Below are positions 554 to 52,747 of a DNA stretch of 64,000 nt, piece by piece. The stretch is from Klebsormidium nitens (lineage: Eukaryota; Plantae; Klebsormidiophyceae). Each line of letters starts with the position of its first letter. Position 1 is the stretch's first letter. The stretch spans positions 1-64,000 of the forward strand of contig DF237060.1 in NCBI GenBank assembly GCA_000708835.1, read 5' to 3'. The notes under the pieces were generated by a model that did not search any database, was not told the DNA's origin, and saw only the letters and a list, made by a program, of their open reading frames with translations. The position numbers and the translations under genes were made by a program.

Positions 554-1613
554 ATGGCCTCGTCTCACCCAAAGAAGCGCGTGCTCTTTGTATGCAGCCA
601 CAACTCAAACCGTTCCATTGCAGCACACGCTGTCGCTAGAAAGCTCCGTCCAGACCTTGAAGTACAGAGTGCAGGCACGGCAGCAGCGGGGACTCTCAAC
701 CCTGTAATGCTCAGCGCTCTTGAATCCAGGGGGTACTCGACAGAAGGCCTCTACTCCAAGGTCAGTAGTTGCTATTCTCTCATCTTGTTTTGTTGCATTC
801 CTTACACTCTGAGCTCTGCTTGATCTCTGCTGGGAACGTCATTCTGGAAGGAGAGGCAATTGCAACGTTAATATGGAGGCGATTGTAGCTGATGATGTGA
901 GAATGCCCAATGTTTTCACTTAGGTTTGTGAGGGAGAGGCCAGGCCCGGCAGTCCAAAGTAGTTGAATGTGCAGGCACTGCTGATCTTTCAATTCATATG
1001 CCACGCCTGCCGCCGCCTGTGATTACGAAGTTGAACTCAACTATCTTAATGAAAGTTCGATTGTCTCTTCCAGTGGACATCTGATGTCCGCTGCTCAGCT
1101 CTTGTTCTCCGGAATCCAGCTCATTCTTCCAATTGCAGGGGATTGATGATGAAGCTGTTCAGGGACTGAACAACAATTGGGACACAATATGCACCATGGG
1201 CTGTCTGGTAAGTTCCATGAAACATATTGTGCTCTTGTTCCTTTACAATCAGTCCATCCGTGTGCTGCTTTGTTTTACCGGACCCAAGACAGCAGACCGT
1301 AGACACAAGAGTGGTCCTGGGGTTCTCCGTGTTCATCTTGTGAGCAGATTGGTTGAGTGCGCATTGTATGCCTGGTCAATTTCTTTCAGATCCTCACCTT
1401 TATGAGAGTTCTTGCAAGCAGGCGTTCACCAACTCTAATGACCGATCTGCTGACTGGTTGTCCATTTTTATGTGCCAGACTAAGGGCCTTCCCTACGACC
1501 CTCCCAAGTCTACGGAGGTTTATGATTGGGCACTTCCTGACCCAGCGGCACAGCCGGAGTTGCTTGACATGGTGGTGGACGAAGTCATCGAGAACGTAAA
1601 GAACATAAAGTGA
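554..1613 (+). CDS. arsC: Arsenate reductase, LMW protein-tyrosine-phosphatase (ArsC) fold, about 136 aa; exons 554-760, 1139-1207, 1479-1613
   Basis: The spliced translation has the P-loop VLFVCSHNSNRS, the SAGT motif, ICTMGC and WALPDP. Both introns are GT-AG and phase 0, and the frame is intact. It lies next to arsH. Confidence 0.85.
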
Positions 1614-2893: not shown

Positions 2894-5737
2894 TTAGGTG
2901 GATGCAACAATGGGTTGCTTGACTTTGGCCGCCTCCTTCTCCGCCTGCGATAAAAGCCGGCCCTTCTCCCGCTTCTCCTTCCGTTCACTGTATCTATCTA
3001 CCAGAAACTGCGCATGCTCTCTCGTCAGCAAAGTGAACTTGTAAAACTCTTCCGCAACGTCGACAACCCGATCTCGCAAGCCGCTCGCTTTCATACGACC
3101 CCGCTCGTCAAACTCTGTCCACGCCTTTGGAACGGAAGACTGGTTGGGGACGACAATCATGCGCATCCACCGACCGAGCACTCGAAGAATGTTGACGACG
3201 TTGAAGCTTTGGGAGCCTCCATTGACCTGAAGAGAAAAGATACCAGATTTAGTATCCGTTTTATAATCTTAAGTAAAAGTTCTCCAAAAGTTGACGTTGT
3301 TTGCACTTTCGAACCTTGAAGAGAACCGAATTCACATGAAAAGCAAGTCGGAGCGGAAAGCCTATAACTTTTATAACCGCTCTACCAATCACAGTGAGTA
3401 CAGTCCGTTCGTACTTAGGCAGCCAAGCTGAATCCATCGAGACCAGGCGACAAGCTGAAGGGTGAAGATCGAACGAGAGAATAGGTAGGTCACGTCGGTA
3501 CTATAAGGTCACGTCGTTACTATTCCACTCCTTGCTTTTGAAGTGGGCGTCGAATCCCAAACCTCCAGAGGTGCACACTCAGTGAGTCTGATTCTTCATT
3601 TGACAAAGCAGATCAAAGTTCGGCCAACTTGGGCCTCCAAAACCGTAGATCCCCTGGTGTGGACACGCGTAATCATTTCAAGAAGCTCGCACTTCATTGG
3701 AAAAGCAAGAAGCCCAGAACCGGATAGCTCAAGTGACATCAGAGCACTCGGAGCGTCTGACCAGAGCCAGTACCTGAGCGATGCAGAGCGTGCGTCCTTG
3801 GGTTGGCCGTACGGACCCCAGGTTGAGCGGGATCCAATCAATCTGATTCTTGAAGACGGCAGTGATGGTTCCGTGCTGCTCCGGAGAGACCCACACGTGG
3901 CCTTCGGACCAGACGGACAACTGCCGGATCTCCTGCACTTTGGGGTGCGCGTCCGATGTCTCGTCTTTCATTGGAAGACCTCGAGGGTCGAAGACGCGGA
4001 CGTCGCAGCCTGCGGGTTGCGAATGCATTTTCGTCTCGTGCTGGACAGTCCCAATCATCTTTTAGGACGAAGTACAAGGAAGTTGTAGAACTTGTCGTAA
4101 ACCTGGACGGCTTACGCTTCTCGAGAGCGGGGAGATGTTGGTCGTCCTCTCACCGAGAGAATGGGGGACGGCGTTCAGAAAACGATGATCTGGGCTCCTT
4201 GCTCATCACTGTGAATGAGCATGCTGGTCGAAAGCAAACGGAATATATTCTGACGCAAACGAGTGTACAAAAGGCCAATTCGTCGTGCTATACGGAAGAC
4301 TTCGCTTCCTGTTGAGATTCAGATCGCAATTAGGAAGGGAGAAGGAGTTGCCGACCCGATTTCAGAAGAGTTTAAGATTGTGCTGAGCCTACGATGGGTC
4401 AGAATACGATGGGTCAGAACACGTACTGAGACCTTTGCTAAATGTTTTGACGCTAGGATACTGATTCAACAACCAACGGACTGGCATCCTTCGTCCAGGC
4501 TCAGATCATCTTCGAGGTGACGTTTTTGAGAATGAGGAGGCAATCAACCCGTTCCTCAACATCAGCCCTGCTTTAGGGAGCTTAACAAGTTTTGGGAAGC
4601 ATCAGACAGCCTAGTTGCTTACCAAGCAGATCGAGAATGCGCGCAAACTCGTACGCCAGCAAGCGCGAGTAGGATCTCTCCCGGAGAGAGCCATACAGGA
4701 CGAGGATCTTTGGGGGCGTCGTGATGCGCTGGCCCCGCGGCTGGAAACCCTGCGCCGACTCCAATTCCAGGTCCTTGACCCAGTCCGAAGCTCTGTGCTG
4801 CTCCGACAGCCGGAACACTTTGTACGGGGATGCGGCTTCGGGGACTTCCTGCAAAAGGCTAGGGAAGGAGGTAACACTAGAGACCACACCCAAGTCATCA
4901 GTTGCTTTACAATCTTGTCCTGTTTCCTGGAAGAAGAAAATGTCTGTTCATCTCGGTTGGTTGGACATTGAGAAAAGGGCTCCAGAAACAAGAAAAGGAT
5001 GATGACTCTGGTCCCTTGTTTGAGCGCTCATCGTGCTGAGAAACAACCAATTTTAAAGCGCCCAGACAGCGTTCTGACCGGGTCAGACAGGCATCTACTT
5101 TGCCCAACCTTTTCAGGGTGCCCCGGTGTGATAGGAGGGCCGAATGGGCTGCATGATAAAGCCAAACCCAGCGCAGAGATTGGAATGCAGGGGACGAATT
5201 TTGCCCGCCCTTCTGGAGCTCTCCCCATAAGCACGCGGAATGCAACTGAAGGCCGAGGCTGACTGCAAGATTGGCGTTGTGACTGCCCCATTCCAATCCT
5301 TACTTGCAGCCCTTACACAATCCTGTTGAAAACTTGCAACAAGATCCGAAAATCAAGTACAGCTCATATGATGCAAACCCAATTTCAAACCAATCCTGCT
5401 GTACTGCTATTAGTGGTGTCTCCTTAAATTTGACCTCTAACATCCTATTTGATGTCACCCACGGAAGAAGGCCAGACGGTGCAACAAGAGTGCAGCTGTG
5501 CAAACGCACAGATGGGCTCAGAGTCAGAAGCGCAACACCCAGCTTTTTTGCTTGATTGATGGGATTGAGTGGGCACACCAATCTTTAACGCTTGGCAGCC
5601 CTGGCTTGACCTACCGGAATGGGGGCTGCATCTGATGCTCCTCTTACGTCAACCTGAGGCGCAGCACCGTTGGCCTGCGACACTCCTGGGTCAAGCGGTG
5701 CTGCCGACCCCTCTGGCCGCTCCGCGCTTCTAGTCAT
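2894..5737 (-). CDS. arsH: Arsenical resistance protein ArsH (NADPH-dependent FMN reductase / organoarsenical oxidase); exons 4848-4623, 4009-3774, 3226-2894, plus a probable first exon starting at gccATG 5737
   Basis: The spliced translation contains [91 protein letters not shown] and DRYSER. Exon phases are compatible. The first exon ([10 protein letters not shown]...) is tentative and has phase-0 donor candidates near 5650 and 5614. Confidence 0.92.
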
Positions 5738-7432
5738 GGCGAAGAGTGGGCGCAGCGAACAACTATTCTGGAGGGCAATTCTGCAAGGAGAGAGCCTCTG
5801 TCAGCTGAAGAAGCCTGCTTAAGGATGACATTATTGATTGGCTCAGAGCGGTCGCCAGGGCCCGAGTTCAAGATCATACTAAATGAGAGCCCCCAACAAA
5901 GACACAGCCTTATGCCCAGGCCTGGTATGTGATATTTGGATGGGTGGCTTCTGATCCGAAGTTTGGCTTGCGTGTATTTGGAAAGATTTGCACGCGTGTT
6001 CTGCACTTTTCCATACGTTTCCGCTTTGTGATGCGGCTTCGAAGTACAACCTTGGCAGGCAGGCGGCCACAATAAAGTGTTCCGAATACCGAAAAAACCC
6101 TATCATCCACGGACAAGCCTATGCTGGGGTCAACAGGCAGTTCTTGTAGCCCGTCCTCTTTGTTGAACACACCAGACTTTGTGCACCAGTCTCATCAGTA
6201 GGTGTGTCTCTGAAAGTTGCTAGCTTTCTACACGCTTGCTACACGCTGGCGCCATATCCAAAGTATTGATTCTTCTTGCACAGGATAGCGTTTACAAACC
6301 CAATGCACCCAATGCCGCTGCTAGAAATGGTCCTTTTGTTGTCCTCAGGAGTGACTCCCTCATGGGACTCCCTCCCACCGCGCGCGGCCGCCGGTGAGAA
6401 GGTTCAACTGATGCACTTCAAACCTTACGAATAGGAAGATCAGAAAGTCAAGTGGATTCTCAAGACAAAGATGGGTAAAATGATGAAGAGATTGCCATTG
6501 TTGCTATATGCTAGTCTTCACCGAAGAGCAGGCGGACAATAACAGTTGGCCAAGTTTTGACATGGCCTCGCTTCATGACAACATTCTCAGGGTATCCCGT
6601 CAGAAGTGCCTTCTCAATACAGTACCGCTCCAGTAACGTGCCTTTCAGAGCCCGCCGCCCCACCTTCCTCTTTCGTAACACAAGCTGCTGGAAGACGATC
6701 GTGACCGCTGTCCAATGCCAGCTACCTTGCAATCCACAAGCAACGATCTTTCCAGGGAACAAGGATTGCTTACCCTCGGATCTGACAGAGGCCAAGGTCA
6801 CTAATGTTTCTTCGCGCTGAGGCTGCTCCGATTCTCAACGACGGAAATGCAATGGCGCTGCTGGCAGTGATCGCCATTCAAACGTGTGCCTCCTGGACTC
6901 CGAGGAGTCGGAGTCTGATAAGAATCAAGATACCCAGCTATAGGCTTCAGTAACACAGGCCCAGGGTGATCCCCTTGCGCATGGAGACACTTTTTTGGGT
7001 TCGAGGGCAGTTGGCTTGACACCGTTTCCCTACTGTTATATAGACCGGCGAATCATCCCGTGCACTCTCCAGCTTGAAACCGGGGGACTTGGACACAGAG
7101 CGGTATACCGGGTTGGAAGATTTGAGGTAGTGTGTCAAGGGTCTGGGACATGGACCGGGTTTCACCAGACATCGGCCTGCCGCCTGACCAAGGCATGCAG
7201 CCTCAGGGGCAAATGTTGCCGGCCAGAAAACAAAGAATGTGGTAGGCTTCTTGAGAATTGGAGGCATTCTAATCCACCCGAAGATGAGCATCCCTGATCT
7301 CTGACTGATGTGTCACTTTTCTACAGCAGCCTCACGCAAGCCGCACCCACCTTGGTGCCAGCTTCAAATCAGCGCAGACTTGAGTATACCACTCGGGGTT
7401 TTGGTGAATACTATCGAGCCTAACATCCAGCC

Positions 7433-10400
7433 ATGGCGGAGGGCTGCGGTTGCGAGAAAGACACGTGCCACATCAGCATCCAGAACCCGCTGACGGCTCG
7501 CGACGCCCCAGGGGACCCGCACGAGGCGACCGAGCTGCAAACGGGGGTGCCCAGTCCCCATTGGTCGCGCCGTCTGATGCGCCATGCTTGCCCCAGAAAT
7601 TGGTGGCAGAGATGGTGGGCACATTCGCAATCGTCTTTGCAGGTGAGGGGCTAGGGTGAAATTATAGGGCTGTAAAGCTTGTGAAATAAGTCAGATTCTG
7701 GGGGGTTCTAGAGTTTTGGGCAGTCTTGCGTTTGTGTTCCAAGTAGAGCTGGAATATCAGTGTGAGTTCTGGGCAACATCAGTCAAAGCTGGGCGCATTT
7801 GCATTGCATCAGCAGTTGAGGGGCTTTGAGATGACCCCAGGGTTCTGAAAAGAGAGAATTTTGAGGCGACTCTGGCAGAATTTGAATGATGGGCACATCT
7901 GCTTTTGGTCTTAGGCGAGGACTAGTTTCCCAGGACGCTCAGTGGGGGTGCCGGAGTCTGAGAGTTTTATGAAGGACAAGAGTTGCGTGCGTATATATGA
8001 ATGTGTTATCAGTGAGGGCTCTGAGGGGCTCTTGCAAGAGACAAATCTGAGACTTTCCGAGGTTAGACTTACGAACTTTAAAGAAGTGGCGGAAAGTGTG
8101 TAGCGGGTTCAGGCCGTGGCCCTTCAAGCTTCTGGTTTGCTACAAATTGTGCGTCAATTGCTTTGTTTGCGTCCCTTTGCTTCTGGCTTGGTTTGAGGAG
8201 CCTATCGTTCCCAGGCTGCCAGTACATCTTCGTTAAGAGCATGGCGTCGTCCTAATACGGAACATCAAGAGGCGCAATGGGTCCTGACTTCTCAAACCAC
8301 CGAGGAACTATTATCTCTGTGTCATCAACATTGAAAAGCCATAACTCAACTGCGACGGCAACAAAGTCTCCCAACCACCGAAACATACTGGGCAAGCAAC
8401 CCTTTGTGCAGCGCTAAACTCTCCTTGCCCCTGGTCAAATAGCCACAGGGAAAACAAGTCCTCTAGCTCAACAATCATAATGGAGCGTCTCTACAAGCCC
8501 TGCCTGGCTGCCCAAGTGCTTTGTGGACTTTCCCAAACGACGATTTTGATTTCTTTGTCAGGCTGTGGGGCGGTCGTGGTCAACGCGCGCTCCCGGGCGC
8601 ACACCTCAACCCCGCAGTCACGCTGGCCTTCGCGTGCGGGCGCCATTTCAGCTGGAAGATGGTGAGCTGGGGGCTCGTTCATGTATTGGCGCAAAACCCA
8701 GTGGACACCTTCCAGTGCAAAGGAACATATTCTATAGACTAAATAATAAGGAGAGCGAAAAATAAGCCCCCAAGCTAATAAAGGTTTACGTGCTCCGCAC
8801 CCGCACCCACCCTTACCCCCTGCCTAACCCCACCCGTCCCCCCACTGTTTTCTACCGTCCACTGAGCTTATTGTGATGTTTCTACATCGCCTGGAACAAA
8901 GCATCCCGGTCTTAAGAAGTGGGTTTGTTGAAGTGAGAGGTTGCGGAAGCATGGGGTAGGTGTGTTTGTTGACGAGCGGATTCAGGACGGATCCTTCTGT
9001 GCATCCTGGGTTCCATTAGGAAAGAGCCTCCTGCGCAAAAGAGTATCATAGATTTCGCTGTTGACGTCTCTGGGGAAACTCGTTTGCCTTTGAGGTACCG
9101 CTTTTCCAAAGCAACTTCACAAACGGACAGGTTGTTCGTCACCATGTCTTTTGCTTCTTGTGTGTCCTTTGCTATTGGAGTCTGTGCAGGTCTTTCGTTG
9201 TTCCCCTGTATGCTCCTCGAAGTTCCGTCCTTGCACTGAACTCAGCACTCTCAGGTTTTGAACAAAGAATCGACGAGCCTCGAGATCAAAACCCCATTTC
9301 GAAGGAGTCTGTTTCTTGATTCAATCTGTTTCTCGTGCTGAAGGCCGTACTCGTCCAACTGACTGAAACAGAGTACGATTTGAAGTTCAAACGCCATTCA
9401 CTTTCCCCCCTCGACCCCAGGTCCCTTTCTACTGGACGGCTCAGTTCGTATCTGCCGTCGCGGGCGCAGCCCTGATCCGCGGGATTCTGGGCTCGGAGAA
9501 AGCGCTCGGGGCGACGGTCCCAGCCGGCGCGGACTGGGAGTCGCTCCTACTGGAGATTGTCCTCACGTTCTTTTTGATGTTCGTGATCGCTGCGGTGGCT
9601 ACGGACACGAGAGCCGTTGGAATGATGGCCGGAATTGCGGTAGGCTTAGTTTCTTTCCGCTCTTTGTGCTCTGGTCTGAACAACGAGCTACCTCAAACCT
9701 TTGAAGATATGGCTTAGTATTTCGAGAAGTGGTGACTGCACGAGAATGCCCGGGAACAACCATTGGACCATGGGTTAGTCGCACAGAGTAAATCTGAAAA
9801 TCGGGTTCGATTTTCGAGGCTTTTTATCTTAATTCCAGAAACTATTTCTTTCTAGATCATTGAGGTGTCAGGGCTTGGGCAAGTCAGGTTGTGGAGGGTG
9901 AGGGCACTTGCTTGATTGTCTCCTTAATCTAGGTACAGTAAGCTTTAGGCATAGTGAGCTCCTACCCTAACACCAAAATCCGAGCCCTTAAAATCACCTG
10001 CTTCGCAACTCGGATCCACCCCAAACCTCCAGAGTAACCGCACCCGTCCCAGCCTGGTTAGCGTAGTACACCTAAAGCTTACCATACCTCAAATGTGAAG
10101 GTTTATGGCAATCGAGCTCAGGGATTCGGGCCTTCCGCATGCACAGCTCTGATATCAAAGCGTGTCTGCAAATGAGAAAGCTCGGCCGCTTTGACGGCTG
10201 ATCTGAGGAACGGATCTTTCTTGGTTTGTCGTCGATCTTCACAGTTGGTTTTTAGTATAGTCGTTGGTTCTTAAGTGCAGCCGCACAGTGCTGAGCTTTC
10301 TTGTCTCTCCATTCCATGCTGGCTTTCTTCCCTCGGCCTTCTTTCGCTCGTCCTCTTCGCTTGTAGTCCAAACGCTTCAGGCTCTGGTTTCGACCTGTCG

Positions 10401-11833
10401 TTTCTAATCGATCTTCAAACCCAGTTTTCCTCTGGCCTCGCACCACTGATAAGCATTTCTCCTTGCAGATTGCCACTTTGTTTTGGGTGGCTTGGAGGGC
10501 CGAGAGGTTTTCTACTTCTCCGCTTTGCCATTTTGATTCCTGGCCTTTCCTTGTCTCTCTACCCCACTCGATGCACACTCCTGATCACCGCCCGCGCAAA
10601 CGAGAAACACACTCTTCTTCACCACCCGCTCAGACGAGAATCGTAAGGCTTTCCTCTGGAAAACCGCTTCTTTTGGCGCTTCAACAGATCGGAGGGACGG
10701 TGGCCTTAGACGCTCTGTTCGGAGGCCCTGTGAGCGGCGCCTCTATGAATCCGGCCAGGTCGTTTGGCCCGGCTCTTGTAGCGCTGGTGAGAAAACAGGG
10801 CCCTCTGCTTTACACATAAATCCGGCCATATGTCAAAACCGTCCGGTCAATCTACTACCGGACCGTTCAGATTCTTTCGGCTTGCTTGGTAGGAGACATG
10901 GAGCACTTGAGACACGTGAGAAAAATTGCAGTTAACCAAAGCTTGGTCAATTTCAGGTTAAGTGGTTTTTACCGTCGAAAACCATACTTGAAGGGCAGGC
11001 AACGAAGTTGATTAGGAACAGAAGTTTCCTGTGAGATGGTCCTCTACGTTTTGGCGTTGCCGGGAAAGCAAGAACACAGAAGTTGGCAAGCGAGTCTGGC
11101 TGGGTTGCAAATAGCTGGCAATTGAGGAGTGCTGATTGGTTAAGAGCTTCCAAAGTTCGATGTTGACTGGGTGTTGCATCTTCCGGGTGCAAGTCGCCAG
11201 GTTCATCTACGTAATTAGCACTGTTGGGAGTCGTTGTGAGATTAAAGTCTTTGCTTGGCAGCCCTCTAGCTCGCATTACACAAATTATTTGCTCTTAACC
11301 ATCTTTGCTTGAGAGCTCCTTAACCAGCGTTTCTATGGTAGAAGACCAGTTAACCAGAGGTTGACCAAGGTTGGTTTATTGCAAAGTGTCCCTGCGATCC
11401 GTTTCATTTGCTCGTCCGAAGGTCACCTGAATAGAACAGTAGCAATCAGCATTCGATTCCTTGTTTGTTTCCTGTCGTCTACGATCATCGTATAGTTGCA
11501 AATAACCGAAAAACGCCGAGCACTTTCCTTGGTCTGCGGGTCGGCATTATTTCTACGATTTCAACTTCCTTGAGGAATATCCGTCTGACGCTTGACGCAC
11601 CATGTGCAACCATAGGTCGTTCGGCTCCATTTGTCGAGCTCTCGCTTGTTCACTTCACTTATGACAACTCCATTATTTCTCAAACCCGGTTTCTCTTTCA
11701 ACCAGGAGTTCCGTGGCCTGTGGGTGTATTTGTGGGCCCGGCGGTGGGCGCAGTGTCCGCCATTTTTGTATACGGTTTTGTGCACCCAAAGGGAATGGAG
11801 GTGGCCAAAGGAGGGCACGGGTGTTGCGAGTGA
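7433..11833 (+). pseudogene. NIP: NIP (nodulin-26-like, AqpN-type) aquaglyceroporin, frame-disrupted in this assembly; exons 7433-7642, 8562-8661, 9421-9639, 10688-10786, 11706-11833
   Basis: Motifs seen: QKLVAEMVGTFAIVFAG-CGAVVVN, GAHLNPAVTLAFA, VPFYWTAQ, LEIVLTFFLMFVIAAVATDTRAVG, GGPVSGASMNPARSFGPALV and LWVY(F)VGP. There are frameshifts at about 7591-7594 and 11729-11731, and TM2 is missing at about 8594. Family identity is secure; pseudogene versus assembly error is not. Confidence 0.85.
8790..8845 (+). repeat. Short dispersed repeat (gctccgcacccgcacccac...ctaaccc(c/t)acccgtccc)
   Basis: Near-identical copy at about 61510-61560 and a weaker inverted copy at about 15070-15115. Confidence 0.55.
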
Positions 11834-13014
11834 AGAACCTCTCCACATGCAATGGAGCAAATGAGCTGGTTTTGTTCCACATATGTCGATCTATGAAGCG
11901 CTGTATAGATGTTGAGATTGATTATTCGAGAGAATGCGCAAACTGTCAGCACCTTGCTGTCAATCGCTATCTTGCGGAAAAGTCAAATTGGGTTTGGGTC
12001 AAGATAAGACGACAAGGTTAGATAGTGTGAAAGGGACGCGGGAGTTAGGATCGTTGCTGCTTGGCAGTGGGCCCCAGTCTAAGTAACATCGCCTCACACG
12101 GTTTATAACCATTTACATCTCTTTCTGGACGTCATCACCATTGACGAGATTCTTGGTAACTTTTATCAATGAGCATTCAAGTTCAAAGCGGCTTGCTGAG
12201 TCAAGTTCCAATACAAGGTACAATCTCTTTGCGAATGGTATGCTGCAGACAAGTTTATACATGCATGGTGCTAAGATAGCTAGTCGGCAAACTGCATATC
12301 ATACATGCATGGCATGGCCGCCGGACTATACTTAATTTGCTTCCATTGGTGCATGTTGCAACACCTTGCACTTGGGTGCACGTTGAGCCACATGGGGACT
12401 CGAGTTCAACTTGTGTCACGGTGGGGCCTGTCATTATGCCAGGTCTGATATAATCTCTCATTTTAGTAAAGCTGGCGCATTAAACTTGCATACGGTTGCC
12501 ATTAGATTGATGGAACATCGCGCCGCGGCCATGCAGGCAATTCCGCGCGTGTGAATATAAACTTGACGTACCTCCTGCGGCTGAGGCCTCGAAGGGGGAC
12601 TCACCGTCATCTACTATACCGGGAATGTTGAACATGCTGGCACAATTGCAACCAGATGCATGTACGTTGACCTTTTATGTACTGATTCCAAACAAATTCG
12701 GAGGGGTTGTGTTGTTTTAGGTGGCCTCGATCGGTTATGCAGGGGGCTCAGGCTCCACGTCGACTGAGGACCGTGCCAGCGGAGGAACGCCTTATGTCAA
12801 AGTCAATGCTTAAAATCCCAACATCCCAATGAAAAGAAACAATAGGACTACACCTTATACGTGTCTGAGAGTGCGCAGCAAAGAAGCATTCAATGACCAC
12901 CACCTACTGCCTCTCATGATAATTGAAAAATCACTAGATTATGCTACAGAATATCAGCTCCATCAAAATAGCAATTGTCCCTATCTTACAAAGCACTTAG
13001 CATTAATCGAGTGC

Positions 13015-46100: not shown

Positions 46101-49100
46101 CCGGTTATAGAAATTTTGAGTTGAGACTCAAGAACAGACAACCATCCAACAACAAGGTAGGGGTCTGGCCGCCGAAGCAAGAGGTGTCTTTCATGGGTCG
46201 TCACGGAATGGTTCTTCAGAAACGGAGGGAAAAGGCCTTTGCCATCGAACCATTTTCACGCTTTTGCTGCTCAAGCGTTAGGGAAGGTTGGTCCCAGAAG
46301 GAATTATTGCCAACCAAAGAAACAGAATGCATGGATGTCACATACAAGCATCAATCACCTCTCGACCTCCACGCTTGCACGTCTTATATGCCCGGAGAGG
46401 CTGCAACGAGAAAAACCTGACGTGCGCAGTGGAAACAGTGTAATGGAGTCACAACTCAAAGAGAGCAAGGGAGGAGAAGAGCCCAGGGCTGACCTTGACG
46501 GCCCCGTATTTCTCGAAGATGTCCCCCAAAGGCGACTTCCAGTGCCACTCGTGGGCGAGCCCGCGCAGAGCAAGGCCCCGCCGCTTCCGGAGCTCGTACA
46601 TCATCAGCGGCCTGGGGGAGATGAAAAGGTCGCAGTTAGTGAAAGGTCATCAAGAATACAAGTAGAAAGGTTCGGTCAGACGCTCAAGCCCGTGTGCCGA
46701 ACCTGCCAACCAGCTGGCGAAACCGACGATGCAGAAAAAGGTACATTGAACCGCTAGGCCTCTTTTAGAACAGACCATGGCTCTGAACCTTCACTCAAAA
46801 GACTTGCGAAGAAGCAGGATGAGATACGTAAGATACGACAGAATGTAGGCTCCCCAGTCGGGCGTTTCCGGTTTAGAGACAACCTGCATTTCGGCTCCGG
46901 TTGTGGCGGAATGAACATGGTTAGTATCTTGGCAACATTGTCACCCCGCCCAGTACCAAAGTATATCTGCAGAAGACTTTCAGAAGAAACACGAAACTCT
47001 CATGAGTTGCGTACAGCATCGACATACTCATGAGTTGCTTACAGCATCGACATACTCTGTTCAACAAATGAAAGAGAGATCGAGTAGCACTCACATGTCA
47101 TAGATCCCGAACAGCGTATGATTGCCCACGAAGAGGAGCGGTGCCGCGTCCACCGGGATGTCGTCCATACCTGCGGCGAAAGAAAGCGAGGGCCAAATAA
47201 AGATTTGAAAAAGGCTTTTATCATCCCCGTTAATATGCGACATAGGACTCCTCATGCGAAAAGCAGGTCACCATTGATAACGGGACTGGCAATCAGGCCA
47301 CGCCTCGGCGCTCATCCTTGGTGCTTCGCTCTGAGAAAGGTGACTTGGAGCAAAGTACAAGCTGAACATGTCGGACACAATCTTCTACTCCGCCTAAGCT
47401 CCTGCCCTTTCCGCTTTAGTTTCACCATTCTATACTCGTATACGCTCCTAAAGGCTCGGTACTTATCAACATGCTCACCAAAGGCAGAACTTGCGCTCAA
47501 GAATCAGACCTCAGGCCTGTCATTCCAGCGCAGTAAGAACCCCTTCTCGCCAACATACCAGTACCGTGAAAGCGGGTTCGAAAAGAACTTGGGCACAACA
47601 ACAAAGTGGGCCAACAAGAAGACCAGCACAGAGAACCTGGTTGTCTATCGGAATGTAGGAAAGAAACACACCGTAGAACTCGGGACGCGTCAGCCAGTTC
47701 CACAGCCGGTACTGCGGCATATCATCCAGCATCGTGCCGAACGCTCGCCCTGCTGCCACCCCCCCAGCCTTCAGATCCGCCGGGGCCTTCTTTGCTACCG
47801 GAGGGGACGCTTCCCCTGCTCCCGCTGCGCTTACCGTACCCCCATTTTCGTTCTCGCCTTCGAAAATTGTAGTCGCTCGCTCCTCTGTCGACGAAGCGAC
47901 TACTGTTCGCGTCTCCTCAGCCGAGCTTTGAGTTGCACTGGCCGCGACCCGATCCGTGCTTCTTCCGTTTCCGCTCTCCAAGCCCTTTCCGAACTCGCTC
48001 AGCGTGCTCCTTCCGTTTTCGCTCAGCGGGCTCCTTCCGTTCCCGCTTCCCGCAGCTTTCCCGTTCTCGCTCTCACGAGCCCTAACATCTCTCTCGACGG
48101 CCCCAAGCCCGCGCAAAAAGCTCGTTCCGTTCTGAGCGCCCCTCACTCCGTTCTGTCCCTCCGCTCCGTTTTCGCTGCTCGTGCCAACCTGACCTAGCGC
48201 CCCGTTTCCTACCCCATCTTCGCTGTCCTTCCACTCCTTCGCGGACTCCGTTCCGTTCTGTTCCGCTCCGGATCCCCTACCAGGCACCCCCTCGACCTGG
48301 AGAGATCCCCCTTCTGACACCGCCCGTCCATTTCCACTAACTTCACCTCCAGAACTCCCGCTCAAACTGCTCGGCCTACTTCCGTTCTCAAGCGTATTAA
48401 CAGCCGCTGGTTGGTCCGACCTAACACCGGCAAAGGGTTTCCCAGCTGCGACGGCCCCATCCAAACTCACTTTCCCCTCAGTTCCGTTTACTGCTGCTCC
48501 TCGGTTCGTCTCTAACCGCGTGCTAAAGCTGCCTACAGTCGCCTCTCTTGCTGACGCCTCCTGCTGAGCTGGGGAGACACTTCGCTCCGCCCGACTCTCT
48601 CCCACGTTCACCCGACCGTGGTCAGCCGAAAGCTCCCCCAGAAAGCTCACGACTCGGGTTCCACTGTCAATCTCTTGCGGCAGCTCCCACGACCTTCCGT
48701 TTGTCTCGGGCAATCCGTTTTCAGCATCTAAGCTCGTTACAGGAGCAGACAACTTCGCTGCCCCTGCCGTCCCATCCAGATTTTGCAAACCGTCGCGTGC
48801 ATTTACAACCCCTGTTTCGCGCCCGCTAAAACTCGCAAAGATATTACTCACAACACCCTCTAACCACTTCAGATCATTCTCGAAAATCGGATTCGACGCC
48901 TCTGGTCTCTTCCGAGCCTTTTGACTCCTCCGCCAACGGTTCACCTCTTCAGTAGGCACCATCCGGTTTAGCTTCGTTCCGTTATCCGTTTTCCGCCCTG
49001 ATTCCGCCAGCGGACTCGACAACCCCGGCGCAACGACCATCGGGCTTTCCTGCAAACGTCCGCTTGTTGAGCTGCTCGAAGAACCGTCGTCCACTCGCCT

Positions 49101-52100
49101 GCTTCCAGAACCAATCAATGGCTTTCCCTCGCTCTCTAAACCGTCCAATGAGCTCCGCCTCCTTTCAGAACCGTTGACCCCCGTCCCGTTGCTTTCTACA
49201 ACCTCCGACGAGTTGCGCGCGCTTTCTGAGCCGTCCGATGACCGCTCCCCGCTCTCCGAGCCGTCCGATTTCCGCTCCTTCAACCCCTCTGACAGTTTTC
49301 GCGTCGTCGTTCGCAGCTGCACTGCCAGATCGTCTCTCAACTTTCTCTCTGGCGGGTTGTCCTTCAGCGCGTCGGCAAAATCCGAGTCCTCGGTTTGACG
49401 CCCCGGGTTCTCTTTCCCACCCTCTTTCTGCCCGTCACTCTCCGGTGAACCCTCATCAGGCCCCGGCTTATTCGGCCCGACGTGCATCTGAACGTTACTC
49501 CCGTCCCGAACCTTTACACCCAACCGGCCATTCTGTTCCGCGGCTACAATCGGATGGACCTCAGTTCCGTTTCCGTCCGCAGCTCGTTCCGGCTCCGTTT
49601 CTACCTTTCCAGCGGAAACGCCAACCTCCGACCCAACACTGACTTCTGTAGACCGCTCAAACCCGTCCGCCGCTGTACCGCTCCATTCCCCCAGCGAGCC
49701 TCCGTTGCGGTCACCCGCGAAACCTGCTTCGCGGAGCAGCGTGGCTAGGCAAATGCCGTCCTCCAGGAGAGCCACGTGTCCCGAGTCCGGCAACACCTTG
49801 ACGTGGCAGTCGGGGATGCGGCTCGCCAGCCAGTCCGCCTCTTCCACCGAGGGCATCAACCGGTCGCGACCACTGCAAAAAAGTACCCACTGGGAATCGG
49901 ACAGTGCGAAAAGCTGAAATACAAATGGAATGCACAATGTGCAGGCAAAAGGTACAGCAAGCAATTGTTCCAGAGCATGGAAACGAAAAGTCATCTGGTC
50001 CAGGACAGAGGTGTCAAAGGGGCAGATGGACAGTCACCCAAAACAGTTCAAGGGTAGTATAGCCTCGGCATTTCGAGAGAACGGATGAAAGTACAGAGAT
50101 AAGATGACTACTTGGGTGCAGAAACGCTTTCCGCACGAACCAGATGGAAGATTCGAGATGTATCGCAACGAAACAACCTTGAACATCCCGTATTTCTTTT
50201 GAAGCCAATTGCAGATAAACGGTGGACGATCTTTGGCACCCAAAGGCTTAGTACTGAACAAACGTCTGACAGTGCTCTGAATGTTCTTCTGCAAGTCCAT
50301 GCTTTAAAATGTAAGCTCTGCAAACCATGGCAAAACGATCCGGTAGATGCACCTCAAGCATTCAGACTTCCATCTGTAGTTGAATGATTGCCAAAATCTA
50401 TCTCCACTTGTCAATGGCCTTCAAACCGCACCTTGCGATCAGAAGCGTTGATGCTTGGATCTGGTTCAGGTCGGCCTCAGAAGGATCAAACCCGAGCATC
50501 ATTTGCGTTCGTCGGGTTACCGCGTCCGGCGTCAACACCCGAGTGCTGCAGAGAACGACGGCTTGGTCAGAGTCGCTCCATAGAGACACGAACTTTTGAG
50601 GGGATTCGACACATGGGTAAACGGATCATTATGAGACGCACAAGACACAAAAACCTTTGCGAGGAGGTCGTTCGAGACCACTTTGAAATGGGAGGTCTAT
50701 TCTGGCGGCCACTGAAGGCAGCCGTAAGCTGATTTGGGTGCGCTTATTTAATGACGACCCAGGCTGCAACGTTCATTACTGACGTCAAATGTTATCATTC
50801 AAGAACACTGTCTGCTCAGATTCCCTCCATCAAGAATCACATATGGACCTGAGAAAGCAATCAAGCCTACGGAAGGAACCCTTGCACTTAGGTGGTGTGC
50901 ATACAAAAGCCACAATTCTCAAGATATGAAGATTGACAGACAGATACAAAGGAACATCCCAAAGCAATTGCCAGTCCCAATTGCAGAAGCAGATGTTTGT
51001 ACTTGGGTCAAGTGAGCCAAATCCGTTTAACTAGTCGATAGCGACCTGAGGGGTTCAAATGGACGAGACAGAACCCAAAGTCGATTCATGTAACTCAAAG
51101 CTAGACTGGACGTAAAAGCAACACAGGGGAATCTTCATTTCGAAACCAACAGCAAGTCGCCTCTGCATCCAGAATGACATCAGAATTCTAAACCAACTGT
51201 TCTCCTTATCTGGTCCTCCAACTCAATACCAGGACACGCGATCCGTGCCATCCAGAACCCAATTTTCATAACCCAAACCTGAATCTTGAATCACTAAACG
51301 GTACTAGGACCAATCAAGTTTAATTCAAAAGACTAGAAAGCTACCTGAAGGGCGGCAGCAGCAGGAACCGGCTCTCCTCCGACATGCGCCGCCAGTCCGC
51401 CAGCAGCGGCGCGATTGCGTACGACCCCAGATCGTGCAGCCCCGCAGGCACCGACCCGAGAAACATCGAGCTCCACTTCAGCAGCGGCTGGCGCCGAAAT
51501 GCCGTGATGCTGTTCAGAACAACCAGCGAGTGGACTTCGGTGGGGTAGGCGGAAGCGAGGCAGAGCGCGATGCCGGTGCCAAAGGATTCCGCATAGACCG
51601 TGACGGGAAAGGGGGGTTTCAGGGAGGGGTTTGAATCAGAATTTAAGGAGGAGTCTGGTGAGGGGTCTGAGGGAACGGTTTGCGGAGGTTTTAGGGATGG
51701 GTCCCAAGTCGGTTCAGGGGGGAGTGTGATCCCATTGATTGAGACTTTCTGAGCATAAATGCTGCCGTTGCTTGACGCAACTGAACCCGTCCCTGTTTCA
51801 GATGAGCCGACTTCTCCAAGATTTCCTTCTCTGCCACTCGCTGGAGACATCTCCGCTGCAGACGCACTCGTCTTGCTGACATCGCCCCCAGCACCGTCTT
51901 CCTCCGCAAGCCTCTGCCGCGCCACCCTTTCATGTCTAATCAGCCCCGCCGCAGCATCCGCCAGCTCGTCGATCGACGAGGTATCCCCCGTAGGAATCAC
52001 GAAGCACCGTACATCGAACTCTTCTAGCAGCGGCCCTAACTGCTGCTTGCAGAAAAGCCCCGTGCCGTCCAACCCGGGCAGGTAAACAAACAGCGGGAGG

Positions 52101-52747
52101 TGCCGCCTCTTCCCCTGCGGGGCTAGAAAGTGGACAGTGTCCTTTGCAATCGCCTCCAAGATGAAGGCCTCGTGGTCCCCCCCCAGAACATCGCGCTCGC
52201 TGATCAGCGCCTCCATCTGAGAAAAGGTGTCGGCATGCAACTCTCCAAGGGGGGTTTGGGAGCTATCATCGCTCAAGGGGGGTTGCGGATTAATCAATGG
52301 AGTGGTGCTGGCATCAAAGAGTGGCGCTGCGGGGAAGCTCTCCTTCCATGGATCATCCAAAGCAGTCCATGTCTGTCCGTTTTTGGACGCCTGTTTCTCT
52401 GGCGCCTCCACATTGCTCCAGGCTTTGGTCGTGTCTTCGGCAAGCGAACCACGGCATGCTAGACTACTCTTAACCAGTCTCGGTGGCTGGCACCGTCCTA
52501 AGGGAACAATTGAGCGCCCAAGAAACGTGGAACTACCAGGAATGCATCCCAACTGGAGCTTTGCTGCACAGCTTGGCGGCACCAGTGATTGCCGCCAGAA
52601 AGGAAAGGGGCGTTCAGAAAAAAGGCAGTTGCTGCCGGAAGTTCCCGTCTGAGTGGTGCATCCCCCATCAAGGGAGCGCATGCGGGCCTGCATGGCCGCT
52701 GGGCGCAAGCCCTGCAGTGCGCCGCTCGCCATGCGCTGATCGTCCAC
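43198..52747 (-). CDS. Phytyl ester synthase-like (PES1/PES2 family) alpha/beta-hydrolase plus acyltransferase, probably plastid-targeted; last exon uncertain
   Basis: PLFVYLPGLDGTG, VYAESFG, SGRDRLMPS, LPDSGHVALLE, LLFVGNHTLFGIYD, LRGLAH, VLLYPGGGRE, YKLLW, IVPFATVGVED, RLYFNFGEPI and KRSKDPLRELLPR, joined by in-phase GT-AG introns. Confidence 0.88.
44880..45935 (-). repeat. Degenerate intronic copies of both edges of the PES exon at about 45312-45090
   Basis: Tail copy at about 44884-44940 (cactcactcgggccccatc...gcgtcctccaccccgaccgtcgcaaa). Head copies at about 45455, 45580, 45706 and 45885 (gcaggttgaaa...ccggggg...gcctg). Confidence 0.7.

Follow-up and report, generated by a model that had tools for sequence, protein, structure and literature searches.

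The stretch of DNA examined here (the window) consists of the first 64 000 nucleotides, read on the forward strand, of contig DF237060.1 in the Klebsormidium nitens assembly GCA_000708835.1. At 7433-11833 on the plus strand it contains a five-exon gene that is named "Nodulin-26 like Intrinsic Protein" (NIP) in GenBank, and this gene, its state and its origin are the subject of the present analysis. By direct reading, the exons were placed at 7433-7642, 8562-8661, 9421-9639, 10688-10786 and 11706-11833, and all eight splice sites are canonical. Exon 1 was resolved by reading in three frames, by DNA alignment with the intact orthologue of a related alga (locus L081) and from translations of the pieces; it encodes a Cys-rich N-terminus (MAEGCGCEKDTC...) and helix 1 (LPQKLVAEMVGTFAIVFAG). 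Intron 1 (7643-8561; phase 1, FAG^CG) has the form GTGAGG...CAG. Exon 2 is a remnant of 100 nucleotides as against 182, in which CGAVVVNARS is followed by a deletion and then by GAHLNPAVTLAFACGRHFSWKM with the first Asn-Pro-Ala (NPA) box at 8608-8616, and its piece 8593-8661 gives a Pfam MIP match. Intron 2 (8662-9420; phase 0, WKM|VPFYW) was fixed by exact splice mapping. Exon 3 is intact and encodes 73 amino acids with helices 3 and 4 (...AVATDTRAVGMMAGIA); it matches Pfam MIP with E 4.8e-10 and aligns without gaps to the structure of rice NIP2;1 (7CJS) with E 8e-20. Introns 3 (9640-10687; GIA|IGG) and 4 (10787-11705; VAL|EFRG), both of phase 0, flank exon 4, whose 33 amino acids include three residues of the selectivity filter (H5 Ala, LE1 Ala and LE2 Arg) and the second NPA box (10748-10756). 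Exon 5 begins with EFRGLWVY and, after a 1-nucleotide deletion, runs on in another frame (VGPAVGAV...GGHGCCE and a stop); the corresponding exon of L081 is a single frame (EFRGLWVYFVGPAVGAV...).

Lesions were called by DNA alignment with L081, and three were found. A 1-nucleotide deletion at about 7580/7581 in exon 1 separates the frame of helix 1 from that of the ATG. An 82-nucleotide deletion after 8593 in exon 2 costs the gene 27 complete codons (DGTLGHV...AVGHV) and a portion of the following one, and with them helix 2 and the Phe of filter position H2; it also shifts the frame. In exon 5, a single nucleotide is missing from the T run at 11730-11731, so that helix 6 and the Cys tail are no longer read in the frame of exon 4. 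Six helices are found in one continuous frame in L081 and in two other Klebsormidium loci (L083 and L089), all three of which retain the 82 nucleotides, but not in the window. The loss of helix 2 with H2 had been recognized in the preliminary description of this DNA, to which the two 1-nucleotide deletions in exons 1 and 5 are now added. Both NPA boxes had also been called intact there; HLNPAV (8602-8619) and SMNPAR (10742-10759) are indeed present in the letters, but the first is severed from its upstream frame because of the frame-breaking lesions. The GenBank MIP gene (7584-11864, plus strand) encodes a protein of 211 amino acids (P0121), which starts at an internal wrong-frame ATG and finishes in another wrong frame. 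Wrong frames account for some 32 residues at the N-terminus of P0121 and some 44 at its C-terminus, and since this protein represents its 50% cluster in the representative library, it can mislead alignments and aquaporin counts.

Given these three lesions relative to the intact L081, the window NIP, as it stands in this assembly, is read as a pseudogene. The ratio of non-synonymous to synonymous substitution rates (dN/dS) between the window copy and L081 is 0.126 at a dS of 0.35, which suggests that the gene was constrained until recently. The branch leading to the window copy carries nine synonymous and six non-synonymous changes, whereas neutral drift would give roughly 1:3; together with the low dN/dS, this points to a recent inactivation.

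The protein belongs to the MIP superfamily (Pfam PF00230), as indicated by the two NPA boxes and by Pfam MIP matches on exon pieces. All close matches are AqpN-type proteins or NIPs, rather than AqpZ, AqpM, GlpF, PIP or TIP, and the nearest solved structure is that of rice NIP2;1 (231 bits; the next MIP scores 116 bits), so that the earlier assignment to the AqpN/NIP group is borne out. In the window the filter residues are H5 Ala of LDALFGGP (10712-10714), LE1 Ala of GASMNPAR (10739-10741) and LE2 Arg (10757-10759). The window therefore keeps A-A-R, with the H2 position deleted. These residues were read directly, as they had been described before, and the filter columns were validated on four controls: rice NIP2;1 (GSGR), a Camellia NIP-I (WVAR), a lycophyte NIP-II (AIGR) and a lycophyte NIP (FAAR). 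Aligned by HMMER with the solved rice NIP2;1, the intact paralogue of K. nitens (P0122) shows no gaps over 215 residues, and F is paired with G, A with S, A with G and R with R at the filter. The complete F-A-A-R filter is carried by the intact relatives, namely L081, P0122, L089 and the Zygnema protein P0123, in agreement with the proposal of an ancestral AqpN/basal-NIP filter. This filter is already on record as the ancestral one of NIPs and as one that bacterial NIPs have too (PMC3355642).

When exon 3 was used in a word search, near-identical proteins came up on two Logan contigs (L081 and L082). L081 (8.2 kb) has about 80% DNA identity to the window and contains the same gene uninterrupted, in 279 codons. 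Since the first coding exon of arsH lies upstream of the NIP in L081 as well, L081 is taken as the orthologue of the window copy. The intact paralogue P0122 (279 amino acids; locus L083) lies on scaffold DF236968.1, where it lies among genes for a GT17 glycosyltransferase, Mpv17 and ribosomal protein L12 and has no ars gene beside it. Like the window copy, with which it shares 85.5% identity over 249 readable residues, it has the identical five exons and intron phases, the N-terminal GCGCEKDxC, the C-terminal HGCCE and the same H5, LE1 and LE2; unlike the window copy, which is broken in exons 1, 2 and 5, it is intact and has the H2 Phe. The presence of two NIPs in K. nitens has been reported (bioRxiv 10.1101/351064). 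L089 is a 189 795-bp contig (Ga0590115_0000284) of the JGI metagenome 3300060285 and represents nuclear DNA of a Klebsormidium-like alga. It carries the orthologue of the P0122 locus with L12 downstream, syntenic with DF236968.1, and L082 comes from the same kind of alga. The exon sizes (211/205-182-219-99-126) and intron phases (1,0,0,0) are common to all four Klebsormidium loci. As to the order of the two locus types (A, with ars genes; B, with RPL12), the branch concerned has a length of 0.012 and a support of 86/36, and holding P0122 and L089 together gives p 0.07 in the approximately unbiased (AU) test.

The position and phase given earlier for introns 1 and 2 are correct for the window, but of the claim that both occupy land-plant NIP sites only the part concerning intron 2 holds. 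Exons were mapped exactly for four land-plant NIPs with genomic DNA (a FAAR NIP and a NIP-II of Diphasiastrum, a Camellia NIP-I and a Zizania NIP-III) and placed on one alignment with P0122. All four have introns at columns 98^0, 173^0, 239^0 and 260^2, and their internal exons measure 225, 195/198 and 62 nucleotides; the same exon lengths are found in Selaginella NIPs, including the FAAR SmNIP5s (PMC3355642). The Klebsormidium introns are at 113^1, 173^0, 247^0 and 280^0. The sole coincidence is thus intron 2 (WKM|VPFY, 173^0), shared with all four land-plant NIPs. Intron 1, which is common to the four Klebsormidium loci and absent from the land-plant NIPs, is found 15 codons further downstream than the first intron of the land-plant genes, which has phase 0 and precedes helix 1. 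Introns 3 and 4 of Klebsormidium lie 8 and 20 codons, respectively, downstream of their land-plant counterparts, the last of which has phase 2. By a rough estimate (16 pairs, about 690 sites), one exact match would arise by chance with a probability of about 2% if sites were uniform, and this figure rises if insertion sites are biased; the shared intron is suggestive of common descent. A metagenome scan with the Zygnema protein recovered intron-less bacterial-type loci only.

Cysteine motifs occur at both ends of these proteins. The HGCC tail is encoded at 11816-11830 in the window and at 6563-6577 in L081. HGCC followed by one or two residues ends all eight streptophyte-algal NIPs (four from Klebsormidium and four Zygnema-type proteins), although these represent only two independent lineages, and this derived form of the tail is thus shared by Klebsormidium with other streptophyte-algal NIPs. 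Among 363 MIPs of bacterial size, 87 end in Cys-x9-11-Gly-Cys-Cys, none has residues after the CC and two have HGCC, and the land-plant NIPs are without a terminal Cys motif. In bacteria the CC tail is not associated with arsC adjacency (Fisher p 0.52), and no account of AqpN Cys tails was found among candidate papers judged by title and abstract. A three-cysteine cluster of this kind binds As(III) in ArsR, ArsD and ArsA. At the other end, the start MA-x-GCGCEKD-x-C is present in all four Klebsormidium NIP loci (window 7433-7468, L081 2383-2418, L083 10001-10036 and L089 7909-7944), the rest of the N-terminal extension being variable; the GCGCEKD motif may serve in metal(loid) binding or as a lipidation site.

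The channel gene lies near two genes of arsenic-resistance type. An arsC-like gene at 554-1613 (plus strand) is of the low-molecular-weight (LMW) phosphatase type, with a CSHNSNRS loop and a Pfam LMWPc match; its NCBIfam matches to LMW-phosphatase arsenate reductases are weak but specific (E 2e-5). An arsH-like gene at 2894-6877 (minus strand), of the NADPH-FMN reductase type (Pfam FMN_red), stands head-to-head with the NIP pseudogene; three exon pieces cover positions 10-219 of the 219 of TIGR02690 ArsH and score 43.5, 138.2 and 152.4 bits, which add up to about 334 bits and so exceed the cut-off of 292. The annotated ends of arsH and the NIP gene are separated by about 0.6 kb (6877-7433), the orientation is the same in L081, and a bidirectional promoter shared by the two genes could be located in this gap. 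The arsH synteny is kept in L081. Among the 80 bacterial aqpN loci, an LMW-phosphatase arsC adjoins aqpN in 30 and arsH in none, nor is arsH adjacent in any of 75 loci with complete aqpN that were re-scanned from the 80 bacterial and 80 metagenome loci. The arsenic-resistance context noted earlier is therefore real as far as the neighbours arsH and arsC are concerned, but the copy within it is dead, the intact paralogue is without ars neighbours and the sampled bacterial aqpN loci do not show the pairing with arsH. The NIP may or may not have been kept in an arsenic context since its transfer. Elsewhere in the window, two open frames on the minus strand encode 824 amino acids (47520-49994; no Pfam match) and 468 amino acids (51341-52747; only a weak alpha/beta-hydrolase match with E 5e-4, below the cut-off), and a scan of the window with Rfam gave no matches.

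Diverse plant NIPs for the phylogenetic analyses came from an exhaustive search of representative sequences, queried with a fragment of a plant NIP, because the word search is tied to the length of its query and yields near-duplicates only; bacterial AqpN sequences were taken from the 80 genome loci. Exons were used as queries within stop-free stretches and P0122 wherever the query had to be full-length, and joined translations of L081 and L089, together with the window pieces with X at every break, entered the local alignments and trees. The identity of P0122 is 58-64% to bacterial AqpN, 63% to Zygnema, 51% to a lycophyte FAAR NIP and 35-47% to other land-plant NIPs; the best non-Klebsormidium match of exon 3 is a Zygnema NIP, and the stretch GTMAGIAIGGTV is identical in Klebsormidium and Zygnema-type NIPs. 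In a maximum-likelihood (ML) tree of 79 rows (LG+C20 with posterior mean site frequencies, PMSF), Klebsormidium and Zygnema are weak sisters (54/74) and the land plants form a strong split (100/92). When all streptophytes are constrained to a single clade, the log-likelihood falls by 0.56 and 2.95 units, and this arrangement is not rejected (p-AU 0.474 and 0.448).

The Klebsormidium channel can be compared with three kinds of known proteins. Like it, the bacterial AqpN of ars operons have F-A-A-R, two NPA boxes, a near-identical loop E (LDALFGGPxSGASMNPARS), a C-terminal Cys cluster in a subgroup and arsC as a frequent neighbour; unlike it, they have no introns, lack the N-terminal extension of about 55 residues and have a tail that ends exactly in ...GCC. 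The land-plant FAAR NIPs (Selaginella SmNIP5;1 and SmNIP5;2, Physcomitrella PpNIP5 and Diphasiastrum P0247) share with Klebsormidium the filter, a cytosolic N-terminal extension and the phase 0 intron at W-x-x|VP-x-Y, but they have no Cys tail, are only 51% identical, and differ in internal exons (225, 195/198 and 62 nucleotides compared with 182, 219 and 99) and phases (0,0,0,2 compared with 1,0,0,0). The Zygnema circumcarinatum MIP P0123 and the transcripts P0387, P0388 and P0391 agree with Klebsormidium in FAAR, in the 63% identity, in GTMAGIAIGGTV and in the ending AHGCC plus one or two residues, and differ in having kept the upstream "RC" cysteine.

We consider it probable that 7433-11833 is an inactivated duplicate of the Klebsormidium "archetype" NIP, an AqpN-type channel with F-A-A-R, which once worked in an ars context. 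The single shared intron and the tail signature shared with Zygnema-type NIPs lend moderate support to an acquisition in common with land-plant NIPs. The gene had been described as a true member of the plant NIP lineage; its place in the AqpN/NIP group and the sharing of intron 2 accord with this, but the trees do not place it with land plants (though the AU test does not reject such a clade) and its identity is nearer to AqpN.

Several observations weigh against the account just given. An ML tree of 86 rows puts Klebsormidium beside a small bacterial group (78/61) with the four Zygnema-type proteins elsewhere, no grouping of Klebsormidium with land plants appears in the ML trees, and three of the four introns are unlike those of land plants; the lesions, moreover, are known from a single assembly, and both the low dN/dS and the location of one deletion in a T run are compatible with sequencing errors too. 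The observations on ancestry would fit an AqpN-type gene that Klebsormidium took from bacteria separately from the transfer that founded the land-plant NIPs, with the shared intron as a parallel insertion. The identity values also favour such a separate acquisition, since no land-plant NIP exceeds 51%, and so does one analysis in which NIPs are dated to the ancestor of Zygnematophyceae and land plants (PMC11316224). However, the branches concerned are weak (78/61 and 53/19), a single streptophyte clade is obtained at the small likelihood costs given above, the shared intron is exact in codon boundary and phase, with the rough chance of about 2%, and the HGCC+x tail and the identical GTMAGIAIGGTV join Klebsormidium with the Zygnema-type NIPs. 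We therefore regard a separate acquisition as unlikely, though as the most serious of the alternatives.

The observations on the lesions would be explained if the gene were intact in the living alga and all three lesions were sequencing or assembly errors of the 2014 draft genome, a reading with which the long-standing constraint against L081, the 9:6 ratio and the eight canonical splice sites are also in keeping. Three independent frame-breaking lesions within about 750 coding bases are, however, much to ask of such errors; the 82-nucleotide loss has clean flanks and removes a whole helix, which is untypical of base-calling error, the exon 1 deletion is outside any homopolymer, and the annotators' model needed junk frames at both ends. 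Errors of this kind seem to us a very unlikely explanation, less likely than recent inactivation. Equally improbable, in our judgment, is that the group of arsC, arsH and NIP descends directly, without having been separated since the transfer, from the bacterial ars operon that was the source of plant NIPs. The frequency of arsC next to bacterial aqpN (30 of 80 loci), the adjacency to both genes in the window, the arsH linkage kept in L081 and the intron in common with land plants are what such a relic would lead one to expect. Yet neither the 80 bacterial nor the 75 re-scanned loci include one with arsH next to aqpN, the three window genes do not all lie on one strand, K. nitens has a further NIP locus that is free of ars genes and has a conserved counterpart in another species (L083/L089), and the alternative age order of the two loci is not rejected (AU p 0.07). 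A study of algal ars neighbourhoods, which mentions no aquaporin, reports that ArsC and ArsH differ in their bacterial affinities and favours assembly within algae over transfer of a whole cluster (PMC7826186).

If the gene is an inactivated duplicate, as we prefer, the following course of events may be proposed. The ancestor shared with the L081 alga would have had a working five-exon gene, head-to-head with arsH and near arsC. By analogy with published work on FAAR NIPs, its narrow F-A-A-R filter would pass uncharged metalloids (arsenite and boric acid) in preference to water or silicic acid. Arsenate, once reduced by ArsC, would leave through the channel as As(OH)3, following its gradient, and the oxidation of trivalent organoarsenicals would fall to ArsH. 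With its three lesions, the window copy of K. nitens NIES-2285 can no longer give a six-helix channel, and the unlinked paralogue P0122 is still intact. Pommerrenig et al. are said to have reported in 2020 that aqpN genes occur in ars operons and that algal and basal-plant FAAR NIPs pass arsenic and boron, with little water or silicon. A K. nitens FAAR NIP, as cited from that work in PMC7709012, was assayed and did not pass germanium; P0122 is probably the protein concerned.

A further proposal, tentative and on balance doubtful, is that, in Klebsormidium species with an intact ars-adjacent copy (L081), arsC, arsH and an AqpN-type NIP constitute a functioning eukaryotic arsenic-detoxification cluster and, jointly, that the terminal Cys cluster is a metalloid-binding or gating module. 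The arsH/NIP pair may be driven from a shared head-to-head promoter in L081-type species. The Cys module may comprise RC-x9-11-GCC at the end of about one-quarter of the sampled bacterial AqpN and AHGCC+x in the streptophyte-algal NIPs, plus the N-terminal GCGCEKDxC of Klebsormidium, and land plants may have lost it when their NIPs became nutrient channels.

The existence of a bacterial-type F-A-A-R channel at the base of the plant NIP family, including K. nitens, is already published, and to this story the present finding adds little; the introns tie the Klebsormidium NIPs to those of land plants only weakly, with one of four shared. What this examination adds is that, of the two NIPs annotated in K. 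nitens, one is a pseudogene as far as the present assembly shows, and that P0121, with its junk ends, is unfit for alignments or for counting as a functional NIP. The ars-adjacent copy is intact in the sister taxon represented by L081, which would be the better subject for study of a bacterial-style ArsC/channel/ArsH pathway in an alga.

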